Sequence record: LR756500.1
DNA length: 64,000 bases
Reading direction: 5' to 3' (one strand)
Shown here: one piece after another, positions 4,299 through 20,730 of the stretch
Layout of the letters: every line of letters starts with the position of its first letter
How positions within the stretch are numbered: position 1 is the first letter of the stretch
Program-made: the position numbers and the translations under genes
The notes under the pieces: generated by a model
Database searches by the model: none
What the model saw: the letters and a program-made list of their open reading frames with translations, nothing else
What the model was told of the DNA's origin: nothing

Positions 4299-5471
4299 TT
4301 AACCTTGACACAGGGAAAATTCGCACGAATGACAATATGTACAACCTTCCTTTTTATAAAGACCTGACGGATCTCCGCATAAAGGACATTTAGTCTCAGA
4401 TAACTTTTCTTCTGCATCACCTTTTAAGTATTTAGATAATGTTCTAGAAATTGCTTTACTAAATGCTACTATAGTTCCTTCAGATTTATTTAATTGTTGA
4501 ACAATGAATTTAATATCAGCACCATGTCTTAGACTAACAGATATCATTCTAGTAAGAGCTTCTTCTTCATCTCTTTCGAATAATTCATTAACATTATCTA
4601 GTACTCCATTACCTGATATTTCTAAACTATAATGACCTCTTTTAACTTTTGTTAGAATAGCGTCTTTTATATTTTTAGATATACTTATATTTTTCTCTTT
4701 AAAAGCAAATACTTCATAAGGTTCATTATCCATTAGTCCTACAATTACGACATAATCGTGTCCCTTTGCTGTAATATGATGTATATTACAAGGAAGAGAT
4801 TTAGGTCTAATAGGAGCTTCAGTTTTAATTATTTTTTCTTTTTGTTTTTTATTGCTAACAAGTACTCCTGATCTTGAACCTTCTCTATAAACAGTTAATC
4901 CTTTACATCCTGATTTCCATCCCGTCTCATATACCTTAGATACCATATCTTCAGTTGCATTTTCTGGCAGATTTGTCGTCGAACTTATAGAATGGTCTAT
5001 CCACTGTTGAATTGCACCTTGCATTTTTACTTTTGCAACCCAATCAATATCTGCAGATGATGCTTTATAATAAGGAGATTTTTTAATTACTTCATCTAAT
5101 TGAGTTTCATTATATAATTTTACTTCTTCTATATTATAATTATTAATTTTTAACCATTTTAAAAATTTAGGATGAAATACTAAATATGTTTCCCATGCAT
5201 CACCTGAAAAATCAGTAAATGAAATATTAACTTCTTTATCGTTTGGATTTACTTTTCTATTTCTTTTATATACTGGAAGAAAAACAGGTTCAATTCCAGA
5301 TGTAGTTTGTGTCATAAGGGAAACTGTATTATGAGATACTATTCCATTATCTAAAATATAATAATGAGTATCTTCTACCTCTATATCCATTGTATAATCA
5401 GTATCCGTAGTTTTTTCTAATATTTCTATTAACTCATATTGTATATTTTCTAAATTAACTATTTCTTGCAT
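4299..5471 (-). CDS. nrdJ: Class II (B12-dependent) ribonucleotide reductase, C-terminal fragment, preceded by split-intein C-half
   Basis: After ...GIVSHN come TVSLMTQTTSGIEP, Q.WIDHSISSTTNLP and KGLTVYREGSR, then a TSCPD-like region and a C-terminal CPLCG...CHSC zinc ribbon. Confidence 0.92.
   Translation of the reverse strand: MQEIVNLENIQYELIEILEKTTDTDYTMDIEVEDTHYYILDNGIVSHNTVSLMTQTTSGIEPVFLPVYKRNRKVNPNDKEVNISFTDFSGDAWETYLVFHPKFLKWLKINNYNIEEVKLYNETQLDEVIKKSPYYKASSADIDWVAKVKMQGAIQQWIDHSISSTTNLPENATEDMVSKVYETGWKSGCKGLTVYREGSRSGVLVSNKKQKEKIIKTEAPIRPKSLPCNIHHITAKGHDYVVIVGLMDNEPYEVFAFKEKNISISKNIKDAILTKVKRGHYSLEISGNGVLDNVNELFERDEEEALTRMISVSLRHGADIKFIVQQLNKSEGTIVAFSKAISRTLSKYLKGDAEEKLSETKCPLCGDPSGLYKKEGCTYCHSCEFSLCQG
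5328..5471 (-). mobile_element. Split intein C-half (IntC, 48 aa)
   Basis: MQEIV...YTMDIEVEDTHYYILDNGIVSHN|T contains intein blocks F and G, the terminal His-Asn and a Thr+1 nucleophile, and has its own ATG. Confidence 0.9.
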
Positions 5472-6589
5472 AATAAATCTTTTATTTTATTTTTTATTTG
5501 TTCTGTAACTAAATTTATATTAATTAATTCTTTTTCCCATATTATTATAATATCAGATTTAAATTTATCTTTTATAATATTAATTCGTCTTTTATCTCTA
5601 TTTCGTATTTCATCATATATGTTATCTTTATAACATTCTATTTCTGGATTTTTATGCCAATAATCACCATATATTTCAATAACTAAATTAATATCTTTAA
5701 TATAAATATCAGGTTTAATTATTTTAAATTCTCCATTTCCAATATAAAAAGTATATTCATTTTCACCATAATAAATTTTATTAAATATTTTATTATATTC
5801 ATTATAAATATATTCACCTATTAATATAGAAAGTTTAGAATATGGTAATCTTTTAGCTTTTTTAATTAATAATTCAGAATACCATTTTTCTCCGTGTTTT
5901 TTAATTAAATTATCCTTTGAATTTCCAAATTTTAAACATTCTTTAAGTTTGTTATATTTTTCATTTCCTAATTCAACACCAAATTTATTAATATAATTTT
6001 CTAATGTATTAGATTTTTTAGCATTTATTTCTTGCCATTTTATTTTTCCTAACTCACCATATTTACTTATTAACTTATCTAATGATGAGGTATTTTGACG
6101 TTTTCTTAAACATTCTTTTGCTTTTTCAATAGAATCTGTTCTTTTTATCCAATATTCTAATGTTGTGGATTTTTCTCTTTTATTGTATGATGAATTGGGA
6201 TCATTTTTAATATAATCTTTAACTGCACATCTTTTTCTAAATAAATCATATCTTTCTCTACCTAATATTTCTCCATATCTTTCAATAAATCGTTGTAAGG
6301 ACCCAGCCGTTTTTTTATTTTTATTATTCCATATTATTAATCCTTTTTCATTTCCATATTTATCTAAATAATATTGTTTAGATGAATAATATTTACACTT
6401 TAATTTATATTCTTTATATTTTTTATTTCCTTCTATTTCACCGTATTTTAGTATATACTTTTCTAAACTTACTCCTCTAATAAATTTATGATATAATTTA
6501 TATGCTTCTTCAATAGAAAATTTATTAATTAATTCATTCCATTTACTAGGATATGTTTTAACATCTATTCCTTTTAACATCTGCTCCAT
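5459..6589 (-). CDS. Free-standing homing endonuclease (KYG-repeat N-region plus Vsr/DUF559-like PD-(D/E)xK domain) inserted within the fractured nrdJ
   Basis: Repeated Y..KYGE..G motifs and C-terminal KPDIYIKDINLVIEIYGDYWH. It lies between the two intein halves and overlaps the IntC start by 13 nt. Confidence 0.8.
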   Translation of the reverse strand: MEQMLKGIDVKTYPSKWNELINKFSIEEAYKLYHKFIRGVSLEKYILKYGEIEGNKKYKEYKLKCKYYSSKQYYLDKYGNEKGLIIWNNKNKKTAGSLQRFIERYGEILGRERYDLFRKRCAVKDYIKNDPNSSYNKREKSTTLEYWIKRTDSIEKAKECLRKRQNTSSLDKLISKYGELGKIKWQEINAKKSNTLENYINKFGVELGNEKYNKLKECLKFGNSKDNLIKKHGEKWYSELLIKKAKRLPYSKLSILIGEYIYNEYNKIFNKIYYGENEYTFYIGNGEFKIIKPDIYIKDINLVIEIYGDYWHKNPEIECYKDNIYDEIRNRDKRRINIIKDKFKSDIIIIWEKELININLVTEQIKNKIKDLLCKK

Positions 6590-6621
6590 TATTTAATTTT
6601 ATTTTATATATTAATGGAGCA
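6582..6621 (-). promoter_or_regulatory. RNA hairpin sequestering the endonuclease start codon, with a candidate late promoter in its loop
   Basis: 10-bp perfect stem, plus-strand tgctccatta (6582-6591) / taatggagca (6612-6621). One arm contains the ATG at 6589. AATATATAA reads on the minus strand at 6604-6612. Confidence 0.65.
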
Positions 6622-6625
6622 ACTG

Positions 6626-6973
6626 TTAATTTATTTTTTTAATTATTTTATCACCTACTTTTAATTCTTCAGCATTCTTCCAAATTGCTTCTTTATCATT
6701 AATTAAAACTAAAAATTTATGAACTTTACTTGTAAAAATATTGTAATCTTTATCTAATTTAAATCTATAACCCTCTGTTTTTCCATTCCAATATAATTTT
6801 GTTATTTTATTATAGTTTCCATTTATATCTAAAATATTAATAGGTTTAATTAAATCAAACCATATATTATTTTTAGTCTCAAGTTCTTTAATATTAACAC
6901 CATTTATATTAAATATTTCTTCTAATGAAATATCACCTATATCAGTTTTAATTATAGCATCTTTTTCTAAACA
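6626..6973 (-). mobile_element. Split intein N-half (IntN, 115 aa)
   Basis: Starts at Cys1 (TGT 6973-6971) after APTG, with block A CLEKDAIIKT, block B TSKVHKFLV and W..AEELKVGD, then a stop. It has no endonuclease domain. Confidence 0.9.
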
Positions 6974-8470
6974 TCCCGTGGGGGCGGCTGTTAGTAAACC
7001 TATATTTCTTCTTCCGTGTTTAATTAACAGTTCACTTACTTCAGAATCTGCTTTAATTAATCTTTGAATAAATGAATTTCCAATTTCTTTATCTCCATCA
7101 TATATTTTAAAAGATCCTCTATCTTTTGCTAATAAACATGATGATTTATAAACTTCAATTGCCATTATTTTATGAACTTCTTCAGAAAATTTTATAGCAT
7201 CATCTGTAGCATAAGTTAAACCTAATGCAGCTAACATGTCTCCTTCAGCAGTAATACCGATTCCAACTCTTCTGCCTAATAAAGCTTTTTCTTTAATTTT
7301 TTTCCATAAATTTAACTCTATTAATTTAACTTCATCAGATTCTTTATCATTATTAATTTTTTCTAATATTTTATCAATTTTTTCTATTTCTAAATCAATA
7401 ATATCATCTGATATTTTTACTGCATATTTTATATGTTCTTTAAATAACTCAAAATTAAATTTTGCTTCTTTTGTAAATGGATTATCTATATATGAATATA
7501 AATTTATAGCAAGTAACCGACAGCTGTCATACTTACATAGGGCGATTTCCCCGCACGGATTTGTAGAAACAGATTTAAATCCAACATCTGCATAACAATC
7601 TGGCACTGATTCACGTATTATAGTATCCCAAAATAATATTCCAGGTTCAGCTGATTTCCATGCGTTGTGAATAATTTTTTTCCATAATTTTTTAGCATCT
7701 ATTTCTTTAACTATTTTTGCTTTTTCTTTTTGTACGTTTATGGGATATTGTTGAAAATATGATGTATTATTTAAAACTGCCGTCATAAATTCATCATCTA
7801 ATTTAACTGATATATTAGCACCAGTAACTTTACCTTCTGCTAATTTAGCATCAATAAATTCTTCTGTATCTGGATGTTTTATAGATATGCTAAGCATAAG
7901 GGCCCCCCTTCTGCCGTCTTGAGCTACTTCTCTAGTAGAATTAGAGTATCTTTCCATAAAAGGAACTATACCTGTAGATGTCAGTGCAGAATTTTTAACA
8001 GCAGATCCTTTTGGTCTAATATGACTTAAGTCGTGACCAACACCGCCTCTTCTTTTCATTAATTGTATTTGTTCTTGATCTATTTTTAAAATAGATCCAT
8101 AAGAATCACCTTCATCACCAATGACAAAACAATTAGATAATGAAACAATTTGTAAATTATTTCCAATACCCGACATAGGACCGCCTTGTGGAACAATATA
8201 CTTAAAATCCTTAATTAATTCAAATATTTTATCTTCTGATATTGGATTAACATAATTATTTTCTATTCTTGAAATTTCACCTGCTAATCTGTGATGCATA
8301 TCATCAGGTGTTTTTTCATAAAATTTTCCATCAGAATCTTTAATAGCATATTTATTTAAAAATACTTTTGCTATCATTTCATCTCCTTTAAAATATTTTA
8401 AAGATTCTTCTAAAGCTTCATTATAAGTATACGTATTAATAACTTCTTTATTAATTTTAGTCATTTCCAT
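6626..8470 (-). CDS. nrdJ: Class II ribonucleotide reductase, N-terminal fragment, ending in split-intein N-half
   Basis: LSNCFV, RRGGVGHDLS, QDGRRGALM, TNPCGEI and RRVGIGITAEGDMLAALG, then LLTAAPTG followed directly by intein CLEKDA and a TAA stop. Confidence 0.92.
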   Translation of the reverse strand: MEMTKINKEVINTYTYNEALEESLKYFKGDEMIAKVFLNKYAIKDSDGKFYEKTPDDMHHRLAGEISRIENNYVNPISEDKIFELIKDFKYIVPQGGPMSGIGNNLQIVSLSNCFVIGDEGDSYGSILKIDQEQIQLMKRRGGVGHDLSHIRPKGSAVKNSALTSTGIVPFMERYSNSTREVAQDGRRGALMLSISIKHPDTEEFIDAKLAEGKVTGANISVKLDDEFMTAVLNNTSYFQQYPINVQKEKAKIVKEIDAKKLWKKIIHNAWKSAEPGILFWDTIIRESVPDCYADVGFKSVSTNPCGEIALCKYDSCRLLAINLYSYIDNPFTKEAKFNFELFKEHIKYAVKISDDIIDLEIEKIDKILEKINNDKESDEVKLIELNLWKKIKEKALLGRRVGIGITAEGDMLAALGLTYATDDAIKFSEEVHKIMAIEVYKSSCLLAKDRGSFKIYDGDKEIGNSFIQRLIKADSEVSELLIKHGRRNIGLLTAAPTGCLEKDAIIKTDIGDISLEEIFNINGVNIKELETKNNIWFDLIKPINILDINGNYNKITKLYWNGKTEGYRFKLDKDYNIFTSKVHKFLVLINDKEAIWKNAEELKVGDKIIKKIN

Positions 8471-8484
8471 TATTATTTATTTTT

Positions 8485-10428
8485 TTATTTTTTATATTCA
8501 AATTTATAGTTACCTGTTCCAAAACACCTATAACAACCTCTATCATGCATTATATCTACCTCTGTTAAACNNNNNNNNNNNNNNNNNNNNNTTAATTTAT
8601 CCTTCCTAAACTTAAACCTATTCTCCCTTAAACCATCTACTACCCACCAATAATTCAAACCAGTATGCCCTATATATTTAAAACCTAATTTTATATATAA
8701 GTTATCTTGCTCATCAACCGTCCAATCACAATCGGCATAACTTATTATTCTATTCGGTATATACTCCTTTATAAAATGCTTAAATAAGCGACTAGCTCCA
8801 CCAATAACTGAAGTATCTAATTTATTAGCAAATCTAGTCAACTCATACTCTCCTTCTTTAGCTACTTGATTTAAATTTTTACGTAGTTTACCAAAGGTCA
8901 TTAATGATACTAACNNNNNNNNNNNNNNNNNNNNNNNNNNNNNNNNNNNNNNNNNNNNNNNNNNNNNNNNNNNNNNNNNNNNNNNNNNNNNNNNNNNNNN
9001 NNNNNNNNNNNNNNNNNNNNNNNNNNNNNNNNNNNNNNNNNNNNNNNNNNNNNNNNNNNNNNNNNNNNNNNNNNNNNNNNNNNNNNNNNNNNNNNNNNNN
9101 NNNNNNNNNNNNNNNNNNNNNNNNNNGAGTTTAACTCCTTTTTCTTTAGCTAATGCTGTCTTATTTAAATGATAATCTTTAAGTTTATTGAATTCATTGT
9201 GCCAATAAACTCCATTATGTTCTATTCCAATCTTATTATTTGGTATATAAATATCTATCTCATTACCATTTAAAATAGTTCGATCTTTTTTAGTTTCTAT
9301 ATTTAAATCATTTATAAATAATTTAATCTCTTCTTCATTTTTACTTTCAAAAGAATTTGTAGAATTTAAAGGATTACATATNNNNNNNNNNNNNNNNNNN
9401 NNNNNNNNNNNNNNNNNTAAAAGATGTATATTTATATTTTTATAATCTTTGCATTCACTACAATAAAAATCCAATGTTCCATTTTCATATACCTGTTTAA
9501 TATCTAAATTATTATATCGTTCTTTTATTTTATTTTTATGTTTTTCAAATATAATTTTTTTAAAATATATACTCTTAAAAATAATTTTGTTTTTGTATCG
9601 TTCTAAATTAGTATCCTTAATTTTTTCTTGTATATCTTTACACTGTGCTACATTTTCAACTCCATAACGTTCTAAATTAGTATCCTTAATTTTTTCCTTA
9701 ATATCTTCTCTTTGTAATGTATTTTCAACTCTATAACGTTCTAAATTAGTATCCTTAATTTTTTCTTGTATATCTTTACACTGTGCTACATTTTCAACTC
9801 CATAACGTTCTAAATTAGTTTTTTTAATTTTTTCTTGTACATCTTTTCTTTGTATAGCATGCTCTACTCCATATAGTTCCAAATTATTTTTAATAATCTT
9901 ATCTTTTATATCTTTATATTGTAAACTACATTCAACTCCATATTTTTTANNNNNNNNNNNNNNNNNNNNNNNCTTAACATCTTTTGCTTGAAAACTATGC
10001 TCAACTCCATATCGTTTTAAAAATGTTTTTTTAATTTTTTCTTTTACAATATTACTTGATCCTGAATTTTCACATCCATATCTTTCTAAATTAGTTTTTT
10101 TAATTTTTTCTTGTACATCTTTTCTTTGTAAAACAGATGTAATTCCTTCATTTTTTAAAAGTCTTTCTTTAGTTTTTATATGTGCACATTTTAAACATGA
10201 ATATTTATCTGTTAATTTATTGGTCTGTGAAAAATATTTATTATATACAACTTTTTTTTCAATACCACAATAATCACATTTAACATTAATTTTAATACCA
10301 CAGCCGGAATTTAAATTATTAATATCTAAAATTATTATTGATTTTATTTTAATATCTAAATATAAATTTTTATAAAATCTTATATTATTTGAAGTAATAT
10401 TAATTTCAACATTTTTATCTAAAATCAT
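8485..10428 (-). CDS. Hef-like homing endonuclease with tandem KTNLERYGVEN repeats
   Basis: Zn-ribbon CDYCG...CLKC, about 23-aa repeats, EIDIYIP...GIEHNGVYWH nuclease motif and C-terminal YELTRFANK...VIGGASRLF...IISYAD domain. Interrupted by four N-runs. Confidence 0.7.
   Translation of the reverse strand: MILDKNVEINITSNNIRFYKNLYLDIKIKSIIILDINNLNSGCGIKINVKCDYCGIEKKVVYNKYFSQTNKLTDKYSCLKCAHIKTKERLLKNEGITSVLQRKDVQEKIKKTNLERYGCENSGSSNIVKEKIKKTFLKRYGVEHSFQAKDVKXXXXXXXXKKYGVECSLQYKDIKDKIIKNNLELYGVEHAIQRKDVQEKIKKTNLERYGVENVAQCKDIQEKIKDTNLERYRVENTLQREDIKEKIKDTNLERYGVENVAQCKDIQEKIKDTNLERYKNKIIFKSIYFKKIIFEKHKNKIKERYNNLDIKQVYENGTLDFYCSECKDYKNINIHLLXXXXXXXXXXXXICNPLNSTNSFESKNEEEIKLFINDLNIETKKDRTILNGNEIDIYIPNNKIGIEHNGVYWHNEFNKLKDYHLNKTALAKEKGVKLXXXXXXXXXXXXXXXXXXXXXXXXXXXXXXXXXXXXXXXXXXXXXXXXXXXXXXXXXXXXXXXXXXXXXXXLVSLMTFGKLRKNLNQVAKEGEYELTRFANKLDTSVIGGASRLFKHFIKEYIPNRIISYADCDWTVDEQDNLYIKLGFKYIGHTGLNYWWVVDGLRENRFKFRKDKLXXXXXXXXLTEVDIMHDRGCYRCFGTGNYKFEYKK
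9585..9840. repeat. About 69-bp coding tandem repeat (KIKDTNLERYGVENVAQCKDIQE units)
   Basis: cgttctaaattagtatccttaattttttc recurs about every 69 nt; more diverged copies extend to about 10130. Confidence 0.8.
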
Positions 10429-12715: not shown

Positions 12716-13180
12716 TTAACCTTCAAGATTTTGTGAAGCATTAATATCTCCAATATAAGCTTCTACATCATCATCTGTCAATTCAGCTTGTTTACCGTTT
12801 TCTAATTGTACTAAATATTTTCCTGTATCTTCACTCCATGAAATAATATCGCCTACTAATCCATCAGCTTTACATTTAACTTTAGATCCAGGTATTAAAT
12901 GACTTTCACCAACCAATTTTTGAGTTTTAGCTCCTAATCTATTATTATCATCATTAACTATAACTTCAATTTCAGTTTCATTAAATTGTTGTTGTCCACT
13001 ATCATCTAAACTAACATTATATTTTTTAATATCTTCACTCCAAGAGTTTAAATATCCTAATTGACCACTAGCTTTTACTTTTATTCTAGTACCTGGTGTT
13101 ATAACATCGGCTTCTTTAACCAAATGCTGATTAGTTTTAACGTCGTTTACAAACTCTTCAAATAATTTTACGTATTCCAT
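12716..13180 (-). CDS. Protein with two tandem SH3/KOW-like beta repeats and capsid-targeting-like tag
   Basis: ITPGTRIKVKASGQLGYLNSWSED..KYNVSLD is repeated as LIPGSKVKCKADGLVGDIISWSED..KYLVQLE. N-terminus is MEYVKLFEEFVND. Confidence 0.65.
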   Translation of the reverse strand: MEYVKLFEEFVNDVKTNQHLVKEADVITPGTRIKVKASGQLGYLNSWSEDIKKYNVSLDDSGQQQFNETEIEVIVNDDNNRLGAKTQKLVGESHLIPGSKVKCKADGLVGDIISWSEDTGKYLVQLENGKQAELTDDDVEAYIGDINASQNLEG

Positions 13181-13592: not shown

Positions 13593-13877
13593 TTATTTTG
13601 TCATATCTATTCCTAATAAATCTTTAGCTAATTTTAATGCATCAGGTTCATCTACTATTCCACTCTTAACTAATTCAGAATAGTATTTAGGATTTTCTGT
13701 TAAATGATCGATTGCAACTTCTTTTGCTGTTGATTTATCACTAGAGTGTTCAGCTTCTACTGCAATTCCAACTTCTAATTCATTTTTATCGATAGTTGAT
13801 TCATCAGTATCATCACCTTTACCTCCAATTAAAACTTGTTCATTAATAAATTCTAAATAAGTTTTTACAAATTCCAT
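13593..13877 (-). CDS. DUF5661-like protein with capsid-targeting-like tag
   Basis: ELEVGIAVEAEH...AKEVAIDHLTENPKYYSEL motif. N-terminus is MEFVKTYLEFINE. Confidence 0.7.
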   Translation of the reverse strand: MEFVKTYLEFINEQVLIGGKGDDTDESTIDKNELEVGIAVEAEHSSDKSTAKEVAIDHLTENPKYYSELVKSGIVDEPDALKLAKDLLGIDMTK

Positions 13878-13887
13878 ATTATTGTTT

Positions 13888-15849
13888 TTATTTATATATT
13901 TCTTTTTTTAATTCATCATAAAATGAATGTAATACTGTTGGAACCATAACTTTAAATACTTCATAATTATCATCTTTAATTGCAGTTCTAACAACCGATG
14001 CACTAATATCTTCATCTGCTCTTTTAATTTCAAATAACTCAAAATCATTTAGCATATTTAATTCATCTTTATATTTATCTATTTGTATTTTGAATGTTTT
14101 TAATCTATCTGTACCTACTCCCCATTTTAGAGGTTCATATTCAGGACGTAATGAATTAAATATTTTATCTACTGATGCTGAATCAATAATAAATACATTT
14201 TCTAGAAACTCATAATTTAATTTTAGTGCATCAAACATTCTTAATTGTAATTCTTTATCGAAAGGATTTAAATCTTTATCTTGTGAAGTCTCTTTACCTT
14301 TAACTATAAAAATTATAACAGGGAGTTTATTTGTCATATGTAATTTATTTAAAACTTTTATATGACCTAATGTAAAAGGTTGAAATCTTCCTACAAATAT
14401 ATTTACTTGTTGTTTTCCATGTTCTTTATCTTTAATATTTAATGCTTCGAATGTTGAATCTTCTAATTTTTCTATATTACTTTCTAATTTATTTAATTCT
14501 TTTTTTAAAAAATCAATAGTTGGAATATTTATAGGATTACTTTCTATTGTTATAGTTATACTATTTTCAGAAACGTCTTCCTCTTCTTCATATATATTAT
14601 CATTCATTTCTTTCATAATAATATAATCACCAAAAGTTTTAAATGAATCATCAGATTCAGCTTCTGTTGCATCTTTTATTTTTCCTATTATAATATTAAT
14701 TTCTTTAATAATAGGTTCTGTTAATACATTGGTAGTCTTTTTTCTCTTTTTTCTTAATGATGATAAAAATATTTTAAATAAATCTTTTAATTTATCTGAT
14801 GAATTTAAATATTCTTTTGTCTTTTGATTTTTAATTAATTCAATATTTAAATCAAATTCTTTCTTTTTTGCAAAACTTGGAGTTTCAAAATCTATATCTT
14901 TGTATTTATCTATATTTTTATTAACATACTTATTAAATATATCACAAATAATTTCAATATATCTTTCATCAGGTTTAATAGATAAAATGCCAACAGATAA
15001 AACGGATTTATTTCTTTCTATAAATTCAATTATATCTAATAATATTATTGAATAAATATCTTTAATAGTTCTAGTATCTTGTACTTTATTTTTCTCTTGT
15101 ATATTTTTTATAATTGGATCTATTATTTTTCCAATATATGTTTTATCATTGTGCTCATCAAAAAATTTAAATACAATTGAATCTATAGGTTTAATTAAAT
15201 CATTATTTAATGTAGTTTTTTTAAGAGATGGATTTAAAATACTTATAATATATTTAGTAAATGAATCTGTTCCAAATATATCACCTAAAGAATCTTTATC
15301 AGTTTTTATAAAATCTTTTATTTGATTTTTTTGCTTATCATTTAATACACCTTCAAAAATAATAGGAGGACCTTGTACTTCTAGTTTATTAGCCCATTCA
15401 TTTAAAATTTTAGAATTATCTATAACTTTAATTGTTTTATTTTGATTATTTTTTACCAATATATGTGTTAATACTAAATTATTAGTAGGTAAATTATCAT
15501 AAACAATATTTACTGGACTTTTATTTACAAAATATTGAAAACTAAATCTCCAATTATCTGGTATTTCTTTTAAAACAGATTTATCAATTTTATTAACAAA
15601 ATGATTTCTAACAGATTCATAATATATCATTAATGTTCTATCTATAATACTTAATGGAATTCTATCATCCCTTTTAAATATATCTATTGGGTCATTAACG
15701 ATATTTTTTCTATCAGCATCTATTTTTTGAACATATACTGTAGATCCATCTAAATTTTCACTTATAATCGTATATTTTTCGAGTAATTCTTCAATAAACT
15801 TATTACCCTGTTCTTTATAAATATCTTTTATTTCTTGTATTCCTGCCAT
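13888..15849 (-). CDS. Two-domain protein: degenerate ligase-like N-domain plus C-terminal HIGH-family nucleotidyltransferase (cytidylyltransferase-like)
   Basis: N-terminal ISENLDG (KxDG motif with K replaced by N). C-terminal FVGRFQPFTLGH, VGTDR and ISASVVR. Confidence 0.7.
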   Translation of the reverse strand: MAGIQEIKDIYKEQGNKFIEELLEKYTIISENLDGSTVYVQKIDADRKNIVNDPIDIFKRDDRIPLSIIDRTLMIYYESVRNHFVNKIDKSVLKEIPDNWRFSFQYFVNKSPVNIVYDNLPTNNLVLTHILVKNNQNKTIKVIDNSKILNEWANKLEVQGPPIIFEGVLNDKQKNQIKDFIKTDKDSLGDIFGTDSFTKYIISILNPSLKKTTLNNDLIKPIDSIVFKFFDEHNDKTYIGKIIDPIIKNIQEKNKVQDTRTIKDIYSIILLDIIEFIERNKSVLSVGILSIKPDERYIEIICDIFNKYVNKNIDKYKDIDFETPSFAKKKEFDLNIELIKNQKTKEYLNSSDKLKDLFKIFLSSLRKKRKKTTNVLTEPIIKEINIIIGKIKDATEAESDDSFKTFGDYIIMKEMNDNIYEEEEDVSENSITITIESNPINIPTIDFLKKELNKLESNIEKLEDSTFEALNIKDKEHGKQQVNIFVGRFQPFTLGHIKVLNKLHMTNKLPVIIFIVKGKETSQDKDLNPFDKELQLRMFDALKLNYEFLENVFIIDSASVDKIFNSLRPEYEPLKWGVGTDRLKTFKIQIDKYKDELNMLNDFELFEIKRADEDISASVVRTAIKDDNYEVFKVMVPTVLHSFYDELKKEIYK

Positions 15850-15880
15850 CAGTATTAAAATTTAATGATTATATTATATA

Positions 15881-17146
15881 TCAAAAACGAAGCAAACCCA
15901 TAATTTGGTTTACAGGAGAAAAGGATCCCGTTAATTTATATCTCTTTGAATTATAAACAAATACAATTCCTTCAGAAGGCATTATTGAATCAAATCCACC
16001 TAAAGCTTCTATTTTATTTAAGTTTAATTGTAATACATCTAATAATCCTTTTCCACCAGTATTTTCTATTTCTTTAATCTTTTTATCTAAATTATCTTTA
16101 ATAACTTTCACTGTATCATTAGAATTAACGGATAAAAATCCACTTATATTTTTTAAAACAGTAACACCTAATTCTGTAAAAATACTCTCAAATTTATCTC
16201 TTATATTTTGTCTAATATTTTTAATTGAATCAGATTTTTCTAGCATTTTAATAAATCCTAAATTATTTAGTTCTAATTCTTTTATTGATATAATAGTTCC
16301 ATTTTTAAAAGCTAAACGTTTAGCTGCTCGTTCAAACACATCTCCGTCAAAATCAGTTTCATGTTTAGCAATACTATTTAAAATAATTTTTTTCCAAAAT
16401 TCTATATGCCATTCTTCTAATGTAGAATTATCATTCATATCCATTGAATCTCTAATATCATCAATTTTTTTATGAAAATAATTTTGTTTAACAGAAAAAT
16501 CGTTATGCTTAGAAATATTTAAATAATTTGGTTCATGAACTTTAAATATGCTATTAATACTTTTATTTACTAAATTTATTACATCAACAATATTTTTAGA
16601 TATTTTATTATTTTCATCAATTGGATTTCCATCAAAATCATAACTTATAAATCCATGCATAATTATTTTAGGTGAATCATATACAATAACATTTGGAGAA
16701 CTTGGATATATTATTTCAATATTCATAAACTTTTTACCTGTTTCAAATTCAACATCTAATATTGATTGATCTATTTTAGAAAATATTTTATTTAATTCGG
16801 TTATAGCTAATGAAAATGCTTTAGATAATTCTCCTCTATTTTCAAATTTTTGTATTAATTGATCTACTGTTAAAGCATCTTTACCATAATTTTTTAAATG
16901 ACCTTTATTTCTTGCTGTAAATAATTGTCCATGTTTCCATGTTATTGATAAAGCATATCCATCCAATTTTTCAGATATTAATTCTTCTTTATCTAAATAT
17001 CCTCCAAGTGCTCTATCAACTATCGTTTTTAAATCTTTAAATGTTAAACTATAATCTTCAAAAGGATGATTTAAATGTCCGTAACTTCCACCTTCTAAAA
17101 TTAAATTTTCATTTAAAAATTCTTCATAAGATTTTAAAAATTTCAT
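15881..17146 (-). CDS. DUF6267-like ATP-dependent ligase/nucleotidyltransferase-fold protein with capsid-targeting-like tag
   Basis: GHLNHPFED, ISEKLDG (ligase motif I) and C-terminal EGIVFVYNSKRYKLTGSF (ligase motifs IV/V). N-terminus is MKFLKSYEEFLNE. Confidence 0.7.
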   Translation of the reverse strand: MKFLKSYEEFLNENLILEGGSYGHLNHPFEDYSLTFKDLKTIVDRALGGYLDKEELISEKLDGYALSITWKHGQLFTARNKGHLKNYGKDALTVDQLIQKFENRGELSKAFSLAITELNKIFSKIDQSILDVEFETGKKFMNIEIIYPSSPNVIVYDSPKIIMHGFISYDFDGNPIDENNKISKNIVDVINLVNKSINSIFKVHEPNYLNISKHNDFSVKQNYFHKKIDDIRDSMDMNDNSTLEEWHIEFWKKIILNSIAKHETDFDGDVFERAAKRLAFKNGTIISIKELELNNLGFIKMLEKSDSIKNIRQNIRDKFESIFTELGVTVLKNISGFLSVNSNDTVKVIKDNLDKKIKEIENTGGKGLLDVLQLNLNKIEALGGFDSIMPSEGIVFVYNSKRYKLTGSFSPVNQIMGLLRF

Positions 17147-17154
17147 TTATAAGA

Positions 17155-17709
17155 TTATTTTATGCATTCAATTATTAAATCACATTTATGTGGTCTAATT
17201 TCTAAATTGTTTAAATATTCAATTTCACTTTTTCTATAATCAGTTTCAAATGCATTTTTAAAACCAATATCTTTAACAGTTCCTATTAAATGATCAGCAT
17301 CCCAAATATATTGATGTCCCCATTTTTTCATTCCTTCATTCATTAAATCAGCAGCACAAGAAGGAGTCCATCCTACTTCACTCCAATATTCTAAATCATT
17401 TTCTAAATATTTTGTTGCTAATGTTTTTAAATTTGGCATACTCATTCTCATTCTACACCCAGGTTTTAAAACTCTAAAACATTCATTTAAAAAAGTGATA
17501 GCAGTTTCTTTGGGTAAATGTTCCATGAAGTGTTCAGAAAAAATACAATCAACTGAACTATCCTTATATGGTAATTTAGGAGCAGTCCAGTTGATTATAT
17601 TTTTTTTATTAGCTTTATCTAAATTATGCCATCCATTCATAGCGTTTGGACCTGCACCTATATTTAATCTAATAGCATCTGTAGGATCAATATCAACGAC
17701 AGTAGTTAC
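17155..17709 (-). CDS. Class I SAM-dependent methyltransferase (type 11-like); the frame extends upstream of the annotated ATG
   Basis: Track ORF 17155..17640 has LPYKDSSVDCIFSEHFMEHL and ECFRVLKPG. Motif I (RLNIGAGP) lies in the same frame 5' of that ATG, and no ATG/GTG/TTG precedes it before the in-frame stop. Confidence 0.75.
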   Translation of the reverse strand, partial: VTTVVDIDPTDAIRLNIGAGPNAMNGWHNLDKANKKNIINWTAPKLPYKDSSVDCIFSEHFMEHLPKETAITFLNECFRVLKPGCRMRMSMPNLKTLATKYLENDLEYWSEVGWTPSCAADLMNEGMKKWGHQYIWDADHLIGTVKDIGFKNAFETDYRKSEIEYLNNLEIRPHKCDLIIECIK

Positions 17710-18569
17710 TTTTTTTTTGAATATTCGTCGTTTAATTCTTCTAATCTATGTTGTTTATAAAAAGTTAAGGCATCTTTAGATTCCCAGTCAGGTAACATTG
17801 AATATGCTTTTTCATATATCATATGAATATCAGATTCTGTATTTAATTTAGCAAATATTTTTTCATTAAGATGAGTATACTTTGTTAAAAATTTATCTAC
17901 TTGATTACTATCAAATACTTTATCTTTTTTGCCTTTACATGCTTCTATAATTTTTGCATCAAAATCTTCTTTTACTTTGCTATCACCTTTCCATTCAGAT
18001 TTAATTTCATCCCAGAATTTTTTCTTTTTTTCTGGATCTAATTGCATTGGAGAATTAACATTATATTTTTTTAATTTACTCTTAAAAAAATCTTTATATT
18101 CTTCTTCATTAATTACTGCTTCTTTTAATTGATCTTTTTCAATTGCATCAGGAACTTTTTGATCAGCTGCATTAGTTATTTTTTTATCAGCTTCAGTATT
18201 TACAACAACTGGATCAATTTTAATTTGATCAGTAGCAGTAGCTGGAGTTTCTTTTACAACATCAATTGGATCAGGAACTTTTTGATCAGCTGCATTAGTT
18301 ATTTTTTTATCAGCTTCAGTATTTACAACTTTAGGATCAATTTGGCCTTCAATTTTATTTGGAAGTTCAGCTTCTTTTTTCTTTGCAGTTAAACCTTTAT
18401 GAATTTCATCATAAAATTTTTTTCTATCATCATCACTTAGATTACTTAAATCTTTAATTTGAAATGCTTTCATTACATCATTAAATATTCCTGCAATAGC
18501 ATCAGCTTCAAGAATAGAAGTTTCTTTAAACTTATTATAAATGTCAGACATTTTACCGATTTTATTCAT
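17706..18569 (-). CDS. Putative head-associated/internal protein with internal duplication
   Basis: Two similar charged helical units (FNDVMKAFQIK...KKFYDEI and YKDFFKSKLKKYNV...KKFWDEI) flank a duplicated linker. The gene ends in an A9-G-TAA slippery context. Confidence 0.6.
   Translation of the reverse strand: MNKIGKMSDIYNKFKETSILEADAIAGIFNDVMKAFQIKDLSNLSDDDRKKFYDEIHKGLTAKKKEAELPNKIEGQIDPKVVNTEADKKITNAADQKVPDPIDVVKETPATATDQIKIDPVVVNTEADKKITNAADQKVPDAIEKDQLKEAVINEEEYKDFFKSKLKKYNVNSPMQLDPEKKKKFWDEIKSEWKGDSKVKEDFDAKIIEACKGKKDKVFDSNQVDKFLTKYTHLNEKIFAKLNTESDIHMIYEKAYSMLPDWESKDALTFYKQHRLEELNDEYSKKK
18147..18329. repeat. Identical 60-bp direct repeat (18147-18206 and 18270-18329)
   Basis: atcaggaactttttgatcagctgcattagttatttttttatcagcttcagtatttacaac occurs twice, encoding VVNTEADKKITNAADQKVPD. 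Confidence 0.9.
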
Positions 18570-18590: not shown

Positions 18591-19190
18591 TTATATATCA
18601 CCCGTTCGTATCAAATATTCCTTAATTATCTCTAATGTAGTTATTGATGGTCTCCAATATAATTTTATTTTACTTTCAATATTATCTAATAATGTATCAT
18701 AATATTCATTTTTATTATGTATTCTATTAGGAGCTGATGATATCCAATATTCTATATCATCAAAATTAAATGTTGATTGTGCACCATATAATATATGAAA
18801 TTTATTTTCTAATTCTGTATAAGCTTTATTAAATTTAATATCTTTTAATCTATTATTTAGTCTAATTAATTCGTCATATAATATTTCTAATGTTTTATCG
18901 ACATCATGTTGTGTATTATTATCTGCAATTGTGTGATACCTCAAAAAATTTCCTATTTTATCCCTATTTATATCAAATGGTATTTTCCAATCCGTATGAA
19001 TATTAAATCCAATTTTTTTACTTACTTCTTTGGGAGCATAATTTTGTTTTAAATCTATAGGAAACTTTCTTCCATTAACCAGCCATTTAAATGTTCCATC
19101 TTGTGATTTATTCACAATATCTTTAACAAAAGATTCATCACTAATATTTGATTTATTTAAAAATTTTTCATATTCTAATATAAATTTCAT
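18591..19190 (-). CDS. Hypothetical protein with capsid-targeting-like tag
   Basis: N-terminus is MKFILEYEKFLN; the remainder is unrecognised. Confidence 0.6.
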   Translation of the reverse strand: MKFILEYEKFLNKSNISDESFVKDIVNKSQDGTFKWLVNGRKFPIDLKQNYAPKEVSKKIGFNIHTDWKIPFDINRDKIGNFLRYHTIADNNTQHDVDKTLEILYDELIRLNNRLKDIKFNKAYTELENKFHILYGAQSTFNFDDIEYWISSAPNRIHNKNEYYDTLLDNIESKIKLYWRPSITTLEIIKEYLIRTGDI

Positions 19191-19215: not shown

Positions 19216-20730
19216 TTAAAATTTTATATTTTGCATAGTGTATGAAAATTTTTGTTCTTTATAAATTTCTTTTCTAGCTTCAGCATGCTTAAACAAATAA
19301 TTAACAAAAGTTTTGCCGTTTTCTAGTTTATATCGCATATCATCAACAAAATCAATTATAATTAATTTATCTTTTCTATTATGCAAACGTAATCCACGTC
19401 CGATACTTTGACGAATTATAATTTCTGATTTAAAACTTTCTGTAAAAAATACATTATGTATATTAGTTATATTAATTCCGGTCGAAAAAGTTCCAAATGA
19501 AGCAACTAATAATCGTTTATCCCCTACTTCCATTAATTTTTTATAATCTTCTCTTAAATCTTTATCTGTACCACCATCAACATAATATACATCTCCTTCA
19601 TAAATATTTCTTAATAAATCATAAAGTTTTTTACCATGTTCTATTCTATGAAATAATATTAAACTATTTTTAGTTGATTTTTTAATTACATTAGCAATAA
19701 ATTTTAATCTCTTATTACTTTCTGCTACATAATCTTGTTCTAATTTAAAAACTTTTTTCCTTTCATCTTCATTAGATGATTTAGATAACCATAAAAATGC
19801 CTCTTTTTGTTCATCTGAAACATAATCCATATAAATCATTTTTACTTCACATGGACTTATAAATCCTTTATTAATTAAATAATCTGCACTAATATTTGTA
19901 ATTAATGGACCTGTATTAGACATTAAATTATATCTATCTATTGTTTGTGGTTTAGGAATAGTTCCACTTACCCCGAAACGATAATCACAATGCCAACACC
20001 TATCTAGTATTTTACAGATTGACGAACTATTTGCTTTATGTGTTTCATCTATTATAACAATATTAAATTGTTTAAAATATTCTTCATCTTTTTTAACTAA
20101 TGATTGATATGTTCCTATTACGAGATTAGTATTTTCTTTTAATTTCATTCCAGAAAATATCTGTTGTATTTTAAGTGTTACTTTTTCATCAGTATTATAA
20201 TCATTAAAATCTTCAGTTGCTTGTAATACTAAAGATACATTTGGAACTATTAATAATATTTTTTCAGCTACATCATATTCTAAAAGATATGCAATAACCA
20301 TAAACACTATTAACGATTTACCGGCACTAGTAGCTAATTCAGCTAAACATCTTCTATAACGTAATATTTTATATGCGGTATCAACTTGATAATCACGCGG
20401 CTTTTTTTCGTTACCTTCAAAAAATTTATCAACCCATTTATAAAATTCTTCTTTTTCAATATCTATATTGAATAATTTTATAGTATCAATTAATTTTAAT
20501 GGTAAATTATGCTCTTTAAAAACTTCCATAACTTCCATCCATAAACCAGAAGGAAGTTTATTACCCTTAACAAAACAAACGTCCCCACTCCACACACCTC
20601 GCTTCACAAGTGGATGAAATCTCCAATTATCTATACGTTTAGTAAAACTAAGCTTAAGTTGTTCATATTCATGTTCAGTTGCTTTAGTTATGTATAAATA
20701 TCTTCTATCAGGACTTAATTGTAATTCCAT
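19216..20730 (-). CDS. uvsW: UvsW-like SF2 DNA helicase
   Basis: PRDYQ, LATSAGKS (Walker A), DETH, GVSGT, SFGTFSTGINI and RQSIGRGLR. Confidence 0.92.
   Translation of the reverse strand: MELQLSPDRRYLYITKATEHEYEQLKLSFTKRIDNWRFHPLVKRGVWSGDVCFVKGNKLPSGLWMEVMEVFKEHNLPLKLIDTIKLFNIDIEKEEFYKWVDKFFEGNEKKPRDYQVDTAYKILRYRRCLAELATSAGKSLIVFMVIAYLLEYDVAEKILLIVPNVSLVLQATEDFNDYNTDEKVTLKIQQIFSGMKLKENTNLVIGTYQSLVKKDEEYFKQFNIVIIDETHKANSSSICKILDRCWHCDYRFGVSGTIPKPQTIDRYNLMSNTGPLITNISADYLINKGFISPCEVKMIYMDYVSDEQKEAFLWLSKSSNEDERKKVFKLEQDYVAESNKRLKFIANVIKKSTKNSLILFHRIEHGKKLYDLLRNIYEGDVYYVDGGTDKDLREDYKKLMEVGDKRLLVASFGTFSTGINITNIHNVFFTESFKSEIIIRQSIGRGLRLHNRKDKLIIIDFVDDMRYKLENGKTFVNYLFKHAEARKEIYKEQKFSYTMQNIKF

Follow-up and report, generated by a model that had tools for sequence, protein, structure and literature searches.

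Paired ligase-like proteins and a HIGH-family adenylyltransferase in a huge phage: a possible virion-delivered end-repair module

Why would a phage keep two ligase-like genes side by side, one with an intact catalytic motif and one without, and fuse the defective one to a nucleotidyltransferase of the HIGH family? This question is raised by the adjacent genes P0002 and P0001 in a 64,000-nucleotide stretch of LR756500.1 (hereafter, the window), which belongs to an uncultured huge phage of 462 kb and has its IMG/VR counterpart at G000:54558-118557. A search of sequencing runs yielded DNA contigs of groundwater and soil metagenomes and no RNA; the runs that contain the sequence are all groundwater metagenomes, and the GC content is about 24%. 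A first-pass annotation, made from the DNA letters, had proposed that the two genes, together with a neighboring methyltransferase, form a nucleic-acid repair or modification module. Here, we examine a reading in which a competent enzyme of RNA-ligase type (P0002, family B) and an NMNAT-like adenylyltransferase (the C-terminal domain of P0001, domain C) make up a conserved phage module for virion-delivered end repair. We give this reading about an even chance of being right.

Predicted ligase folds of P0002 and P0001

The features of the two genes, in window coordinates, are as follows.

15881..17146, minus strand: P0002 (family B), 421 amino acids, an intact RNA-ligase-type nucleotidyltransferase as predicted from its fold and invariant motifs
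16958..16978, minus strand: motif I of P0002, ISEKLDG, residues 57-63, with K60 as the predicted lysine that accepts adenosine monophosphate (AMP)
13888-15849, minus strand: P0001, 653 amino acids, a family A domain fused to domain C
14590..15849, minus strand: residues 1-420 of P0001 (family A), a predicted degenerate Rnl2-like part comprising a nucleotidyltransferase and a helical C-domain (Foldseek, PF09414 relatives, ESM Atlas)
15745..15765, minus strand: disabled motif I of P0001, ISENLDG, residues 29-35, in which N32 replaces the lysine
13891..14418, minus strand: residues 478-653 of P0001 (domain C), a predicted NMNAT/PPAT-like adenylyltransferase of the HIGH family (PF01467, VIA)
14362-14373 and 13987-14007, minus strand: signatures of domain C, TLGH (residues 493-496) and ISASVVR (residues 615-621)

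The active/inactive pair had been proposed from the motif I heptapeptide, and both of its forms, intact in P0002 and disabled in P0001, are indeed there; positions 13888 and 15881, by which the genes had been located, are their stop-codon ends on the minus strand. Since the match between the two heptapeptides is not significant pairwise (BLASTP E 0.6), we tested the ligase claim by fold and by family. The ligase nature of both proteins rests on predicted folds and family conservation, not on the motif match; by these measures both have ligase-type nucleotidyltransferase folds, intact in P0002 and degenerate in P0001, in line with the first-pass annotation. A direct homology between families A and B was also considered and rejected: in addition to the BLASTP value above, no cross-hits were found between their hidden Markov models, and hhalign yielded P 0.0096 at a probability of 4%, so we claim no common descent beyond that of the superfamily.

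A word search recovered 64 homologues of P0002, and a 52-row alignment was fed to AlphaFold. The model reached a predicted local distance difference test score (pLDDT) of 88 and a predicted template modeling score of 0.86, with low pLDDT at residues 1-21. In comparisons by Foldseek and VIA-align, the best 37 rows were exclusively polynucleotide ligases, RNA ligases first. The best VIA match was the Naegleria Rnl 6vt3 (Z 9.0, root-mean-square deviation (rmsd) 4.0, 184 aligned), and further RNA ligases included T4 Rnl1 (Z 8.8; Foldseek prob 0.96), fungal Trl1 (8.4), and Rnl2 and REL1 (7.7). Among DNA ligases, one from a marine phage scored 7.0-7.1 and that of African swine fever virus 6.5-6.6, with other DNA ligases and capping enzymes at 5.4-5.7. 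Similarly, a BFVD search with P0002 returned members of its own family first and then viral RNA ligases. Across 149/149 B domains from IMG/VR loci, the following residues are invariant: K60, D62 and G63 (motif I), R79 and K81 (Ia), E144 (III), E392 and G393 (IV), and K404 (V), where motifs were assigned to residues by motif order and secondary structure and not by residue-level superposition. The structural comparison revealed no oligonucleotide-binding (OB) domain in family B. Overall, family B is a predicted covalent nucleotidyltransferase that is recognizable by fold and motif order only.

The predicted model of P0001 has a pLDDT of 85. Its residues 1 to ~420 match full-length T4 Rnl2 in Foldseek (2hvr_A, E 1.3e-5; 2hvq, E 6.2e-5; prob 1.00). 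P0001 itself has no match to PF09414 at E <= 1; its relatives P0168 and P0175 reach E 1e-5 over residues 26-221, with 26.1-26.2 bits against a cut-off of 27, and the Atlas neighbors of the N-terminal part carry PF09414 and T4_Rnl2_C. At the motif I lysine column of family A, 121 homologues have K (94), N (13), Q (11) or M (2). Most carry Ser for the Asp of KxDG, Q occupies motif III in 92/121, and motif IV is more commonly DS or ES than EG; judging by these motifs, much of family A is degenerate in other ways. In P0001 the motifs read N / D-G / Q / D-S / K, with the nucleophile lysine and the glutamates of motifs III and IV lost. Because the nucleophile and both the metal- and ribose-binding glutamates are gone, the label "disabled" is justified for this protein. 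When profiles of families A and B were compared with PDB sequences, they matched PPAT and NMNAT through domain C only and gave noise for the ligase parts, and P0168 alone had no match.

The nick-sealing ligases of the T4 Rnl2/PF09414 type (Rnl2, REL1 and Naegleria Rnl5) are thus a useful reference. Like them, the N-terminal part of P0001 has the two-domain Rnl2 layout, family A keeps the motif I context E-K-x-x-G-S-x-F-S, and Rnl5 and Rnl2 are among the best structural matches of P0002. Unlike them, P0001 has neither the lysine nor the motif III/IV glutamates and carries a HIGH-family transferase as its fusion partner, whereas P0002 has a helical domain of ~170 residues (about 217-387) inserted between motifs IIIa and IV, as well as a conserved GHxxHPF[DE] motif N-terminal to motif I. 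Neither the P0001 N-terminal part nor P0002 passes the Pfam ligase threshold.

The cytidylyltransferase-like HIGH domain that the first-pass annotation had placed on P0001 is real and is NMNAT/PPAT-like, with both signature motifs present. Residues 484-622 match PF01467 (CTP_transf_like) with 31.8 bits against a cut-off of 21, and the motifs GRFQPFTLGH and ISASVVR are intact. Residues 480-653 superpose on 1f9a, the archaeal M. jannaschii NMNAT (VIA Z 16.3, rmsd 2.2, 152/164 residues), and on PPATs with a Z of about 15 (15.2); the PDB sequence match is NadM 2qjo. All NCBIfam equivalog scores of the domain are far under their cut-offs. Domain C therefore resembles archaeal/NadM NMNAT and PPAT in fold and in the signatures (T/H)xGH and ISxSxxR, and differs from them in its constant partnership with a ligase-like enzyme; this phage also has separate genes for the salvage of nicotinamide adenine dinucleotide (NAD).

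Gene pairing across phages and decay of family A

To count gene neighborhoods, we took the 80 IMG/VR loci that a search with the A-C alignment had recovered. B lies directly before A-C in 70 of them, so the two genes do co-occur in relatives. The refuting condition that the first-pass annotation had set, a lack of co-occurrence, thus does not hold for B and A-C; it does hold for the methyltransferase, which is in none of the 80. UvsW lies upstream in 74 loci, a homologue of the small protein o127 follows A-C in 40, and a P0004-like gene stands between UvsW and B in 7. In locus L004, the order is gp32...UvsW...B, A-C, dUTPase, PolB and ribonucleotide reductase (RNR). At least 570 B and at least 471 A-C stretches were confirmed in IMG/VR. 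The pairing is not obligatory, since three complete huge-phage genomes (374-435 kb) carry A-C and no B at E <= 0.1; as a positive control, the same search detected B in four control records, with E 1e-137 to 1e-150. Across all the architectures found, a ligase-like enzyme and a HIGH transferase form an invariant core, judging by the gene sequences. The four architectures are listed below.

Architecture 1: B adjoining A-C, in this phage and in 70/80 loci
Architecture 2: cytidyltransferase (CTase)-B fusions, in Microcystis phage Mel-JY01 (639 amino acids) and in P0008, P0064 and P0065
Architecture 3: long open reading frames (ORFs), measured from stop to stop at 1,000 to ~1,630 codons, with B at the C-terminal end, at L017:5512-10407, L032:1902-6692, L061:642-5183, L028:7343-11230 and other IMG/VR loci
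Architecture 4: in T4-like cyanophages, a DUF6267 gene (E 5e-140) directly upstream of a "cytidyltransferase", in 66/66 testable loci

Architecture 2 extends to fusion rows of 600-970 amino acids in BFVD and the Atlas, some of which include DUF5661 too, and the best BFVD matches of family B include the CTase fusion of S-PM2. In one Atlas cluster of B-fold proteins, CTP_transf_like occurs in 92% and DUF5661 in 82% of the members. The DUF5661 protein encoded next to P0001, P0188, is probably part of the module.

Six of the long ORFs of architecture 3 were tested in Pfam, and five of them (5/6) contained, N-terminal to B, an AAA_33/Zeta-type P-loop kinase (4), an RNase_T-like exonuclease (1) or a CTase (2). 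A looser CTase profile marks a HIGH-motif region in 26/26 ORFs of at least 1000 amino acids, most of them near or above E 1e-5. The kinase domain of the long forms has weak PDB matches (Pnkp1, E 0.14; PSTK, E 0.006), and its sequence suggests that it may be a polynucleotide kinase. These ORFs also have conserved N-terminal short motifs of their own, for example MNKLTEWL..E and MSLKKLVEEI.

Architecture 4 bears on the proposed "DUF6267-like" label, which holds only distantly. In the ESM Atlas, P0002 lies beside DUF6267 clusters (features 0.96-0.97, TM 0.68-0.71), and these features, the structure and the common gene context suggest that P0002 may be a distant relative of DUF6267. The Pfam model (PF19782) had no match in the phage genome, with S-PRM1 gp066 as a positive control at E 5e-140, and hhalign of the P0002 family against DUF6267 gave a colinear motif order over 137 columns that was not significant (P 0.09). 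The label does not suit P0001, the N-terminal part of which is instead Rnl2/PF09414-like. The cyanophage pair (e.g., S-PRM1 gp066/gp067), which is fused in S-PM2, likewise couples a KxDG protein to an NMNAT-like transferase. It differs from the pair described here in that DUF6267 has no N-terminal leader of the kind found on P0002 (see below) and that its transferase is not accompanied by an Rnl2-like domain. No mention of DUF6267 was found in the literature searched.

The strongest support for an active/inactive pair is the pattern of decay in family A. A canonical ligase signature (E-K-x-D-[GA], E, E-G, K) is present in 8/12 A domains from loci without a detected B, a count that overstates independence, as these domains represent three or four lineages only, and in 0/70 A domains adjoining B. 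The latter show K-x-[QSA]-[AG] or Q-x-D-G instead, and their motif III residue is D, Q or E. The trend is nonetheless clear in its direction: it seems that the transferase requires one competent ligase, and A appears to drift into a pseudo-enzyme where B supplies it. From this distribution of motifs, binding and not catalysis may be the reason why A persists.

A leader resembling the T4 capsid targeting sequence

P0002 and three of its neighbors open with a common leader, M-[KE]-[FY]-x-x-x-[YF]-x-[EK]-F-[LIV]-N-[EDK].

17108..17146, minus strand: N-terminal leader of P0002, MKFLKSYEEFLNE, T4 capsid-targeting-like by core motif match
13593..13877, minus strand: P0188, a DUF5661 protein of 94 amino acids (PF18905, E 2.3e-10), with leader MEFVKTYLEFINE
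12716..13180, minus strand: P0190, 154 amino acids, no assigned function, with leader MEYVKLFEEFVND
18591..19190, minus strand: P0191, 199 amino acids, no assigned function, with leader MKFILEYEKFLNK

Eight further ORFs of the genome carry the leader (G000 120217, 124888, 125509, 135042, 172430, 256136, 256404 and 278626), and the form shared across all twelve is MK[YF][IL]xxYx[ED]F[LIV]NE. Its core motif has 11 N-terminal matches (within the first 10 residues of 668 ORFs) compared with 7 in the remaining ~125,000 residues, an excess of about 30-fold. On family B the leader recurs in related phages, where nearly all of 53 distinct N-termini are recognizable, 36 of them by the strict pattern. 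In the P0002 model, the leader is disordered.

The leader has Y-x-E-F-[ILV]-x-E in common with the capsid targeting sequence of T4, MKTYQEFIAE, which is removed by cleavage inside the prohead (PMC8442874). Internal proteins of T4 reach the core by means of this sequence, and gp21 cuts after Glu (PMC5694885). A gp21-type protease is encoded in the phage genome as well (PF03420, E 2e-12). As in the internal proteins and Alt of T4, the N-terminal Y-x-E-F-[ILV]-x-E ends in Glu and stands on many unrelated small proteins; unlike the T4 sequence, the leader here is three residues longer, and its role in packaging and its cleavage are predicted ones. The suggestion that the repair proteins are delivered by the virion, a guess in the first-pass annotation, thereby gains unexpected support from sequence likeness, as the leader stands on P0002 and its neighbors.

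Among the leader-bearing proteins outside the window are a Pnk-type 3'-phosphatase (PNK3P/HAD, E 2e-21; G000 119585-120217) and a leucine-rich repeat protein. We infer that the leader-bearing proteins may form a candidate set of proteins packaged into the head of this huge phage and injected. If a ligase and an end-healing phosphatase travel together in this way, they would be suited to mending cut nucleic acid as soon as infection begins. We know of no precedent for an RNA ligase or a Pnk phosphatase as capsid-targeted cargo.

The small protein P0189 (13201-13584, minus strand), encoded between P0188 and P0190, has a C-terminus (..LKFIKTFNEFKTEYK) that resembles the N-terminal leader of its neighbors; a past gene fusion, or recombination between genes with the leader, may have left it there.

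Mechanism, rival explanations and gene neighborhood

In the mechanism that we propose, B would perform lysyl-AMP chemistry and seal or 5'-adenylylate broken polynucleotide ends, most likely those that host nucleases create in RNA or tRNA. A, without catalysis of its own, would bind the substrate or serve as a scaffold and so bring C to these ends. C might add or remove an adenylyl group on the 5'-phosphate (App-N chemistry, formally the reaction from nicotinamide mononucleotide (NMN) to NAD) or supply a dinucleotide cofactor. B would probably be loaded into the head and cut after Glu by the protease of gp21 type; injected along with the DNA, it could then act before phage translation starts.

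Several observations weigh against this mechanism. The leader is, by sequence, a resemblance to the T4 signal and not a demonstrated one, and A-C does not bear it. P0002 has no Pfam match at E <= 1 in hmmscan, DUF6267 included, and profiles of A and B reach no solved ligase among PDB sequences. The locus lies in the replication module and not among the head genes. In addition, the genome contains two PF09414 ligases, one of which adjoins an AAA_33 kinase ORF (G000 287-289 kb) in a pair like T4 Pnkp/Rnl; a canonical kinase and RNA-ligase pair is already present, and the presence of another repair system would have to be explained separately. The role of C is the weakest link, because we know of no HIGH-family enzyme that acts on polynucleotide ends, and because of a result on NadD and NadR. 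In one report, these E. coli enzymes showed no RNA capping or decapping (PMC8131947).

Known end-repair systems may offer a partial parallel. The healing partners in T4 Pnkp with Rnl1, and in Pnkp/Rnl/Hen1, have possible counterparts in the AAA_33 kinase fused to B in other phages and in the PNK3P phosphatase that shares the leader of B in this one. Unlike in those systems, this locus has no kinase or phosphatase, and the partner is a HIGH-family adenylyltransferase, which is absent there.

One rival explanation centers on NAD or dinucleotides. C could be a true NMN adenylyltransferase that rebuilds NAD+ against NAD-depleting defenses, with the ligase-like proteins either taking their AMP from NAD+, in which case C would recycle the NMN, or producing dinucleotide polyphosphates; we judge this reading unlikely. 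C is indeed nearest to NMNATs in fold and sequence (GRFQPF...GH), NAD+-using ligases release NMN (PMC8131947), and the phage also encodes an NAD-dependent LigA. However, a NadV-like NAPRTase gene already lies near a stronger CTP_transf_like gene at G000 298-311 kb, ~230 kb from the locus, and with these two genes, the second a better NMNAT candidate, the phage does not need domain C for NAD salvage. Moreover, no lineage has C without a link to a ligase-like enzyme, and such a link would be needless for a plain salvage enzyme; both B and A resemble ATP-dependent RNA ligases rather than LigA. From their sequences, conventional versions of both RNA repair and NAD salvage are carried by this phage.

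A second rival, which we likewise regard as unlikely, holds that B (or A where B is absent) serves lagging-strand or nick repair as a DNA ligase of non-canonical type. The constant place of the genes between UvsW and dUTPase/PolB fits this view, and Rnl2/Rnl5-type enzymes, which B and A resemble, seal duplex nicks according to the titles of PDB entries 2hvr and 5cot. On the other hand, the phage already has a DNA ligase of LigA type. This NAD-dependent enzyme is split (G000 158-162 kb; L008, L252), and both halves are there: the adenylation domain in a 282-amino-acid ORF and the OB-fold part in a frame of 399 amino acids, with an ORF of ~337 amino acids between them. Furthermore, B scores Z 9.0 with RNA ligases versus 5.4-7.1 with most DNA ligases and lacks an OB domain, and end repair would better account for the capsid-targeting-like leader and for the links to a kinase and a phosphatase.

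A bolder version of the end-repair mechanism is, in our estimate, quite unlikely. It posits a virion-injected kit in which the HIGH-family enzyme adenylylates or deadenylylates polynucleotide 5'-phosphates (App-RNA/App-DNA, polymer counterparts of NAD), an activity that would be new enzymology, beside a new RNA-ligase family, DUF6267/B, while the lysine-less Rnl2-like domain would serve for end binding or for step 3 only.

The idea that repaired or capped ends are then modified by the methyltransferase next door, as in a Pnkp/Rnl/Hen1-type or capping-type system, is very improbable and is largely refuted by synteny: the enzyme does lie directly upstream of P0002, but a methyltransferase is found in 0/80 related loci, and this one is a Methyltransf_11 enzyme of 184 amino acids that has no canonical start codon and in which domain searches found no Hen1-specific or cap-methyltransferase features.

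The remaining genes around the pair are the following.

19216-20730, minus strand: UvsW-like helicase (Pfam)
17706..18569, minus strand: P0004, a K/E-rich repeat protein of 287 amino acids that ends in an A9G run
17709..17718, minus strand: the A9 run (17710-17718) plus G, forming the heptamer A_AAA_AAG, followed by TAA
17155..17709, minus strand: S-adenosylmethionine (SAM) methyltransferase of Methyltransf_11 type, 184 amino acids (Pfam)

Every gene from 8.4 to 22 kb lies on the minus strand. In order of transcription, these are the UvsW-like helicase, P0191, P0004, the methyltransferase, P0002, P0001, P0188 and two small ORFs, followed downstream by dUTPase, a 472-amino-acid N-terminal piece of a family-B DNA polymerase and a homing endonuclease. 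This is a T4-type block of replication and nucleotide metabolism. Matches to the T4 late promoter TATAAATA are no more frequent in the window than expected (47 seen versus 47.75 expected). Within window positions 4299-10428, only the N-terminal piece of the DNA polymerase gene is present, as is also the case in related phages, and a homing/HNH endonuclease of 647 amino acids comes next. The RNR large subunit in the same region is split into a 614-amino-acid piece with an intein-like end, a 376-amino-acid ORF and a 390-amino-acid C-terminal piece.

The first-pass annotation had correctly recognized a SAM methyltransferase next in line, and its analogy with Pnkp/Rnl/Hen1 fails on this very gene, a small Methyltransf_11 enzyme that is absent from 80/80 related loci and neither Hen1-like nor conserved. 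By this distribution, the methyltransferase is a lineage-specific insertion, a passenger outside the conserved module. Its first ATG, at 17640, comes after motif I, such that LNIGAG (in LNIGAGPN, the SAM-binding glycine loop) lies upstream of it. The open frame extends to 17709-17745 without any ATG, GTG or TTG, and the extension upstream of the ATG is covered, from its residue 1 on, by an alignment with a methyltransferase of a Salmonella phage. P0004 ends in TCA AAA AAA AAG TAA, where the phase of A_AAA_AAG is such that a -1 shift would lead into the frame of the methyltransferase, and the length of the A9 run is identical in contigs from two samples. As no stable RNA structure was found downstream of A_AAA_AAG (z +1.42), a programmed frameshift is only one possibility; the methyltransferase could be made as a frameshift fusion with P0004, could use a non-canonical start, or could be a decaying gene.

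Within P0004 itself, a repeat of ~24 amino acids (..VVNTEADKKITNAADQKVPD..) occurs twice in nearly identical form. A 40-amino-acid motif of P0004 (phrog_28651) recurs in a 936-amino-acid "DNA ligase 1" encoded beside the DNA polymerase of Tenacibaculum phage pT24. We considered this protein as a relative of A or B and rejected it, as it has no similarity to either and no Pfam domain.

The ligase and NMNAT-like pair is common in phages. If the end-repair reading of B and C is true, it would provide a function for a gene pair that is widespread in marine phages. It would also define a new RNA-ligase family with a pseudo-ligase offshoot, in which an enzyme decays into a scaffold once a second ligase is present. 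Finally, it would mean that some T4-like phages inject ready-made repair enzymes, thereby defeating tRNA-cutting defenses that block the translation of phage repair genes.

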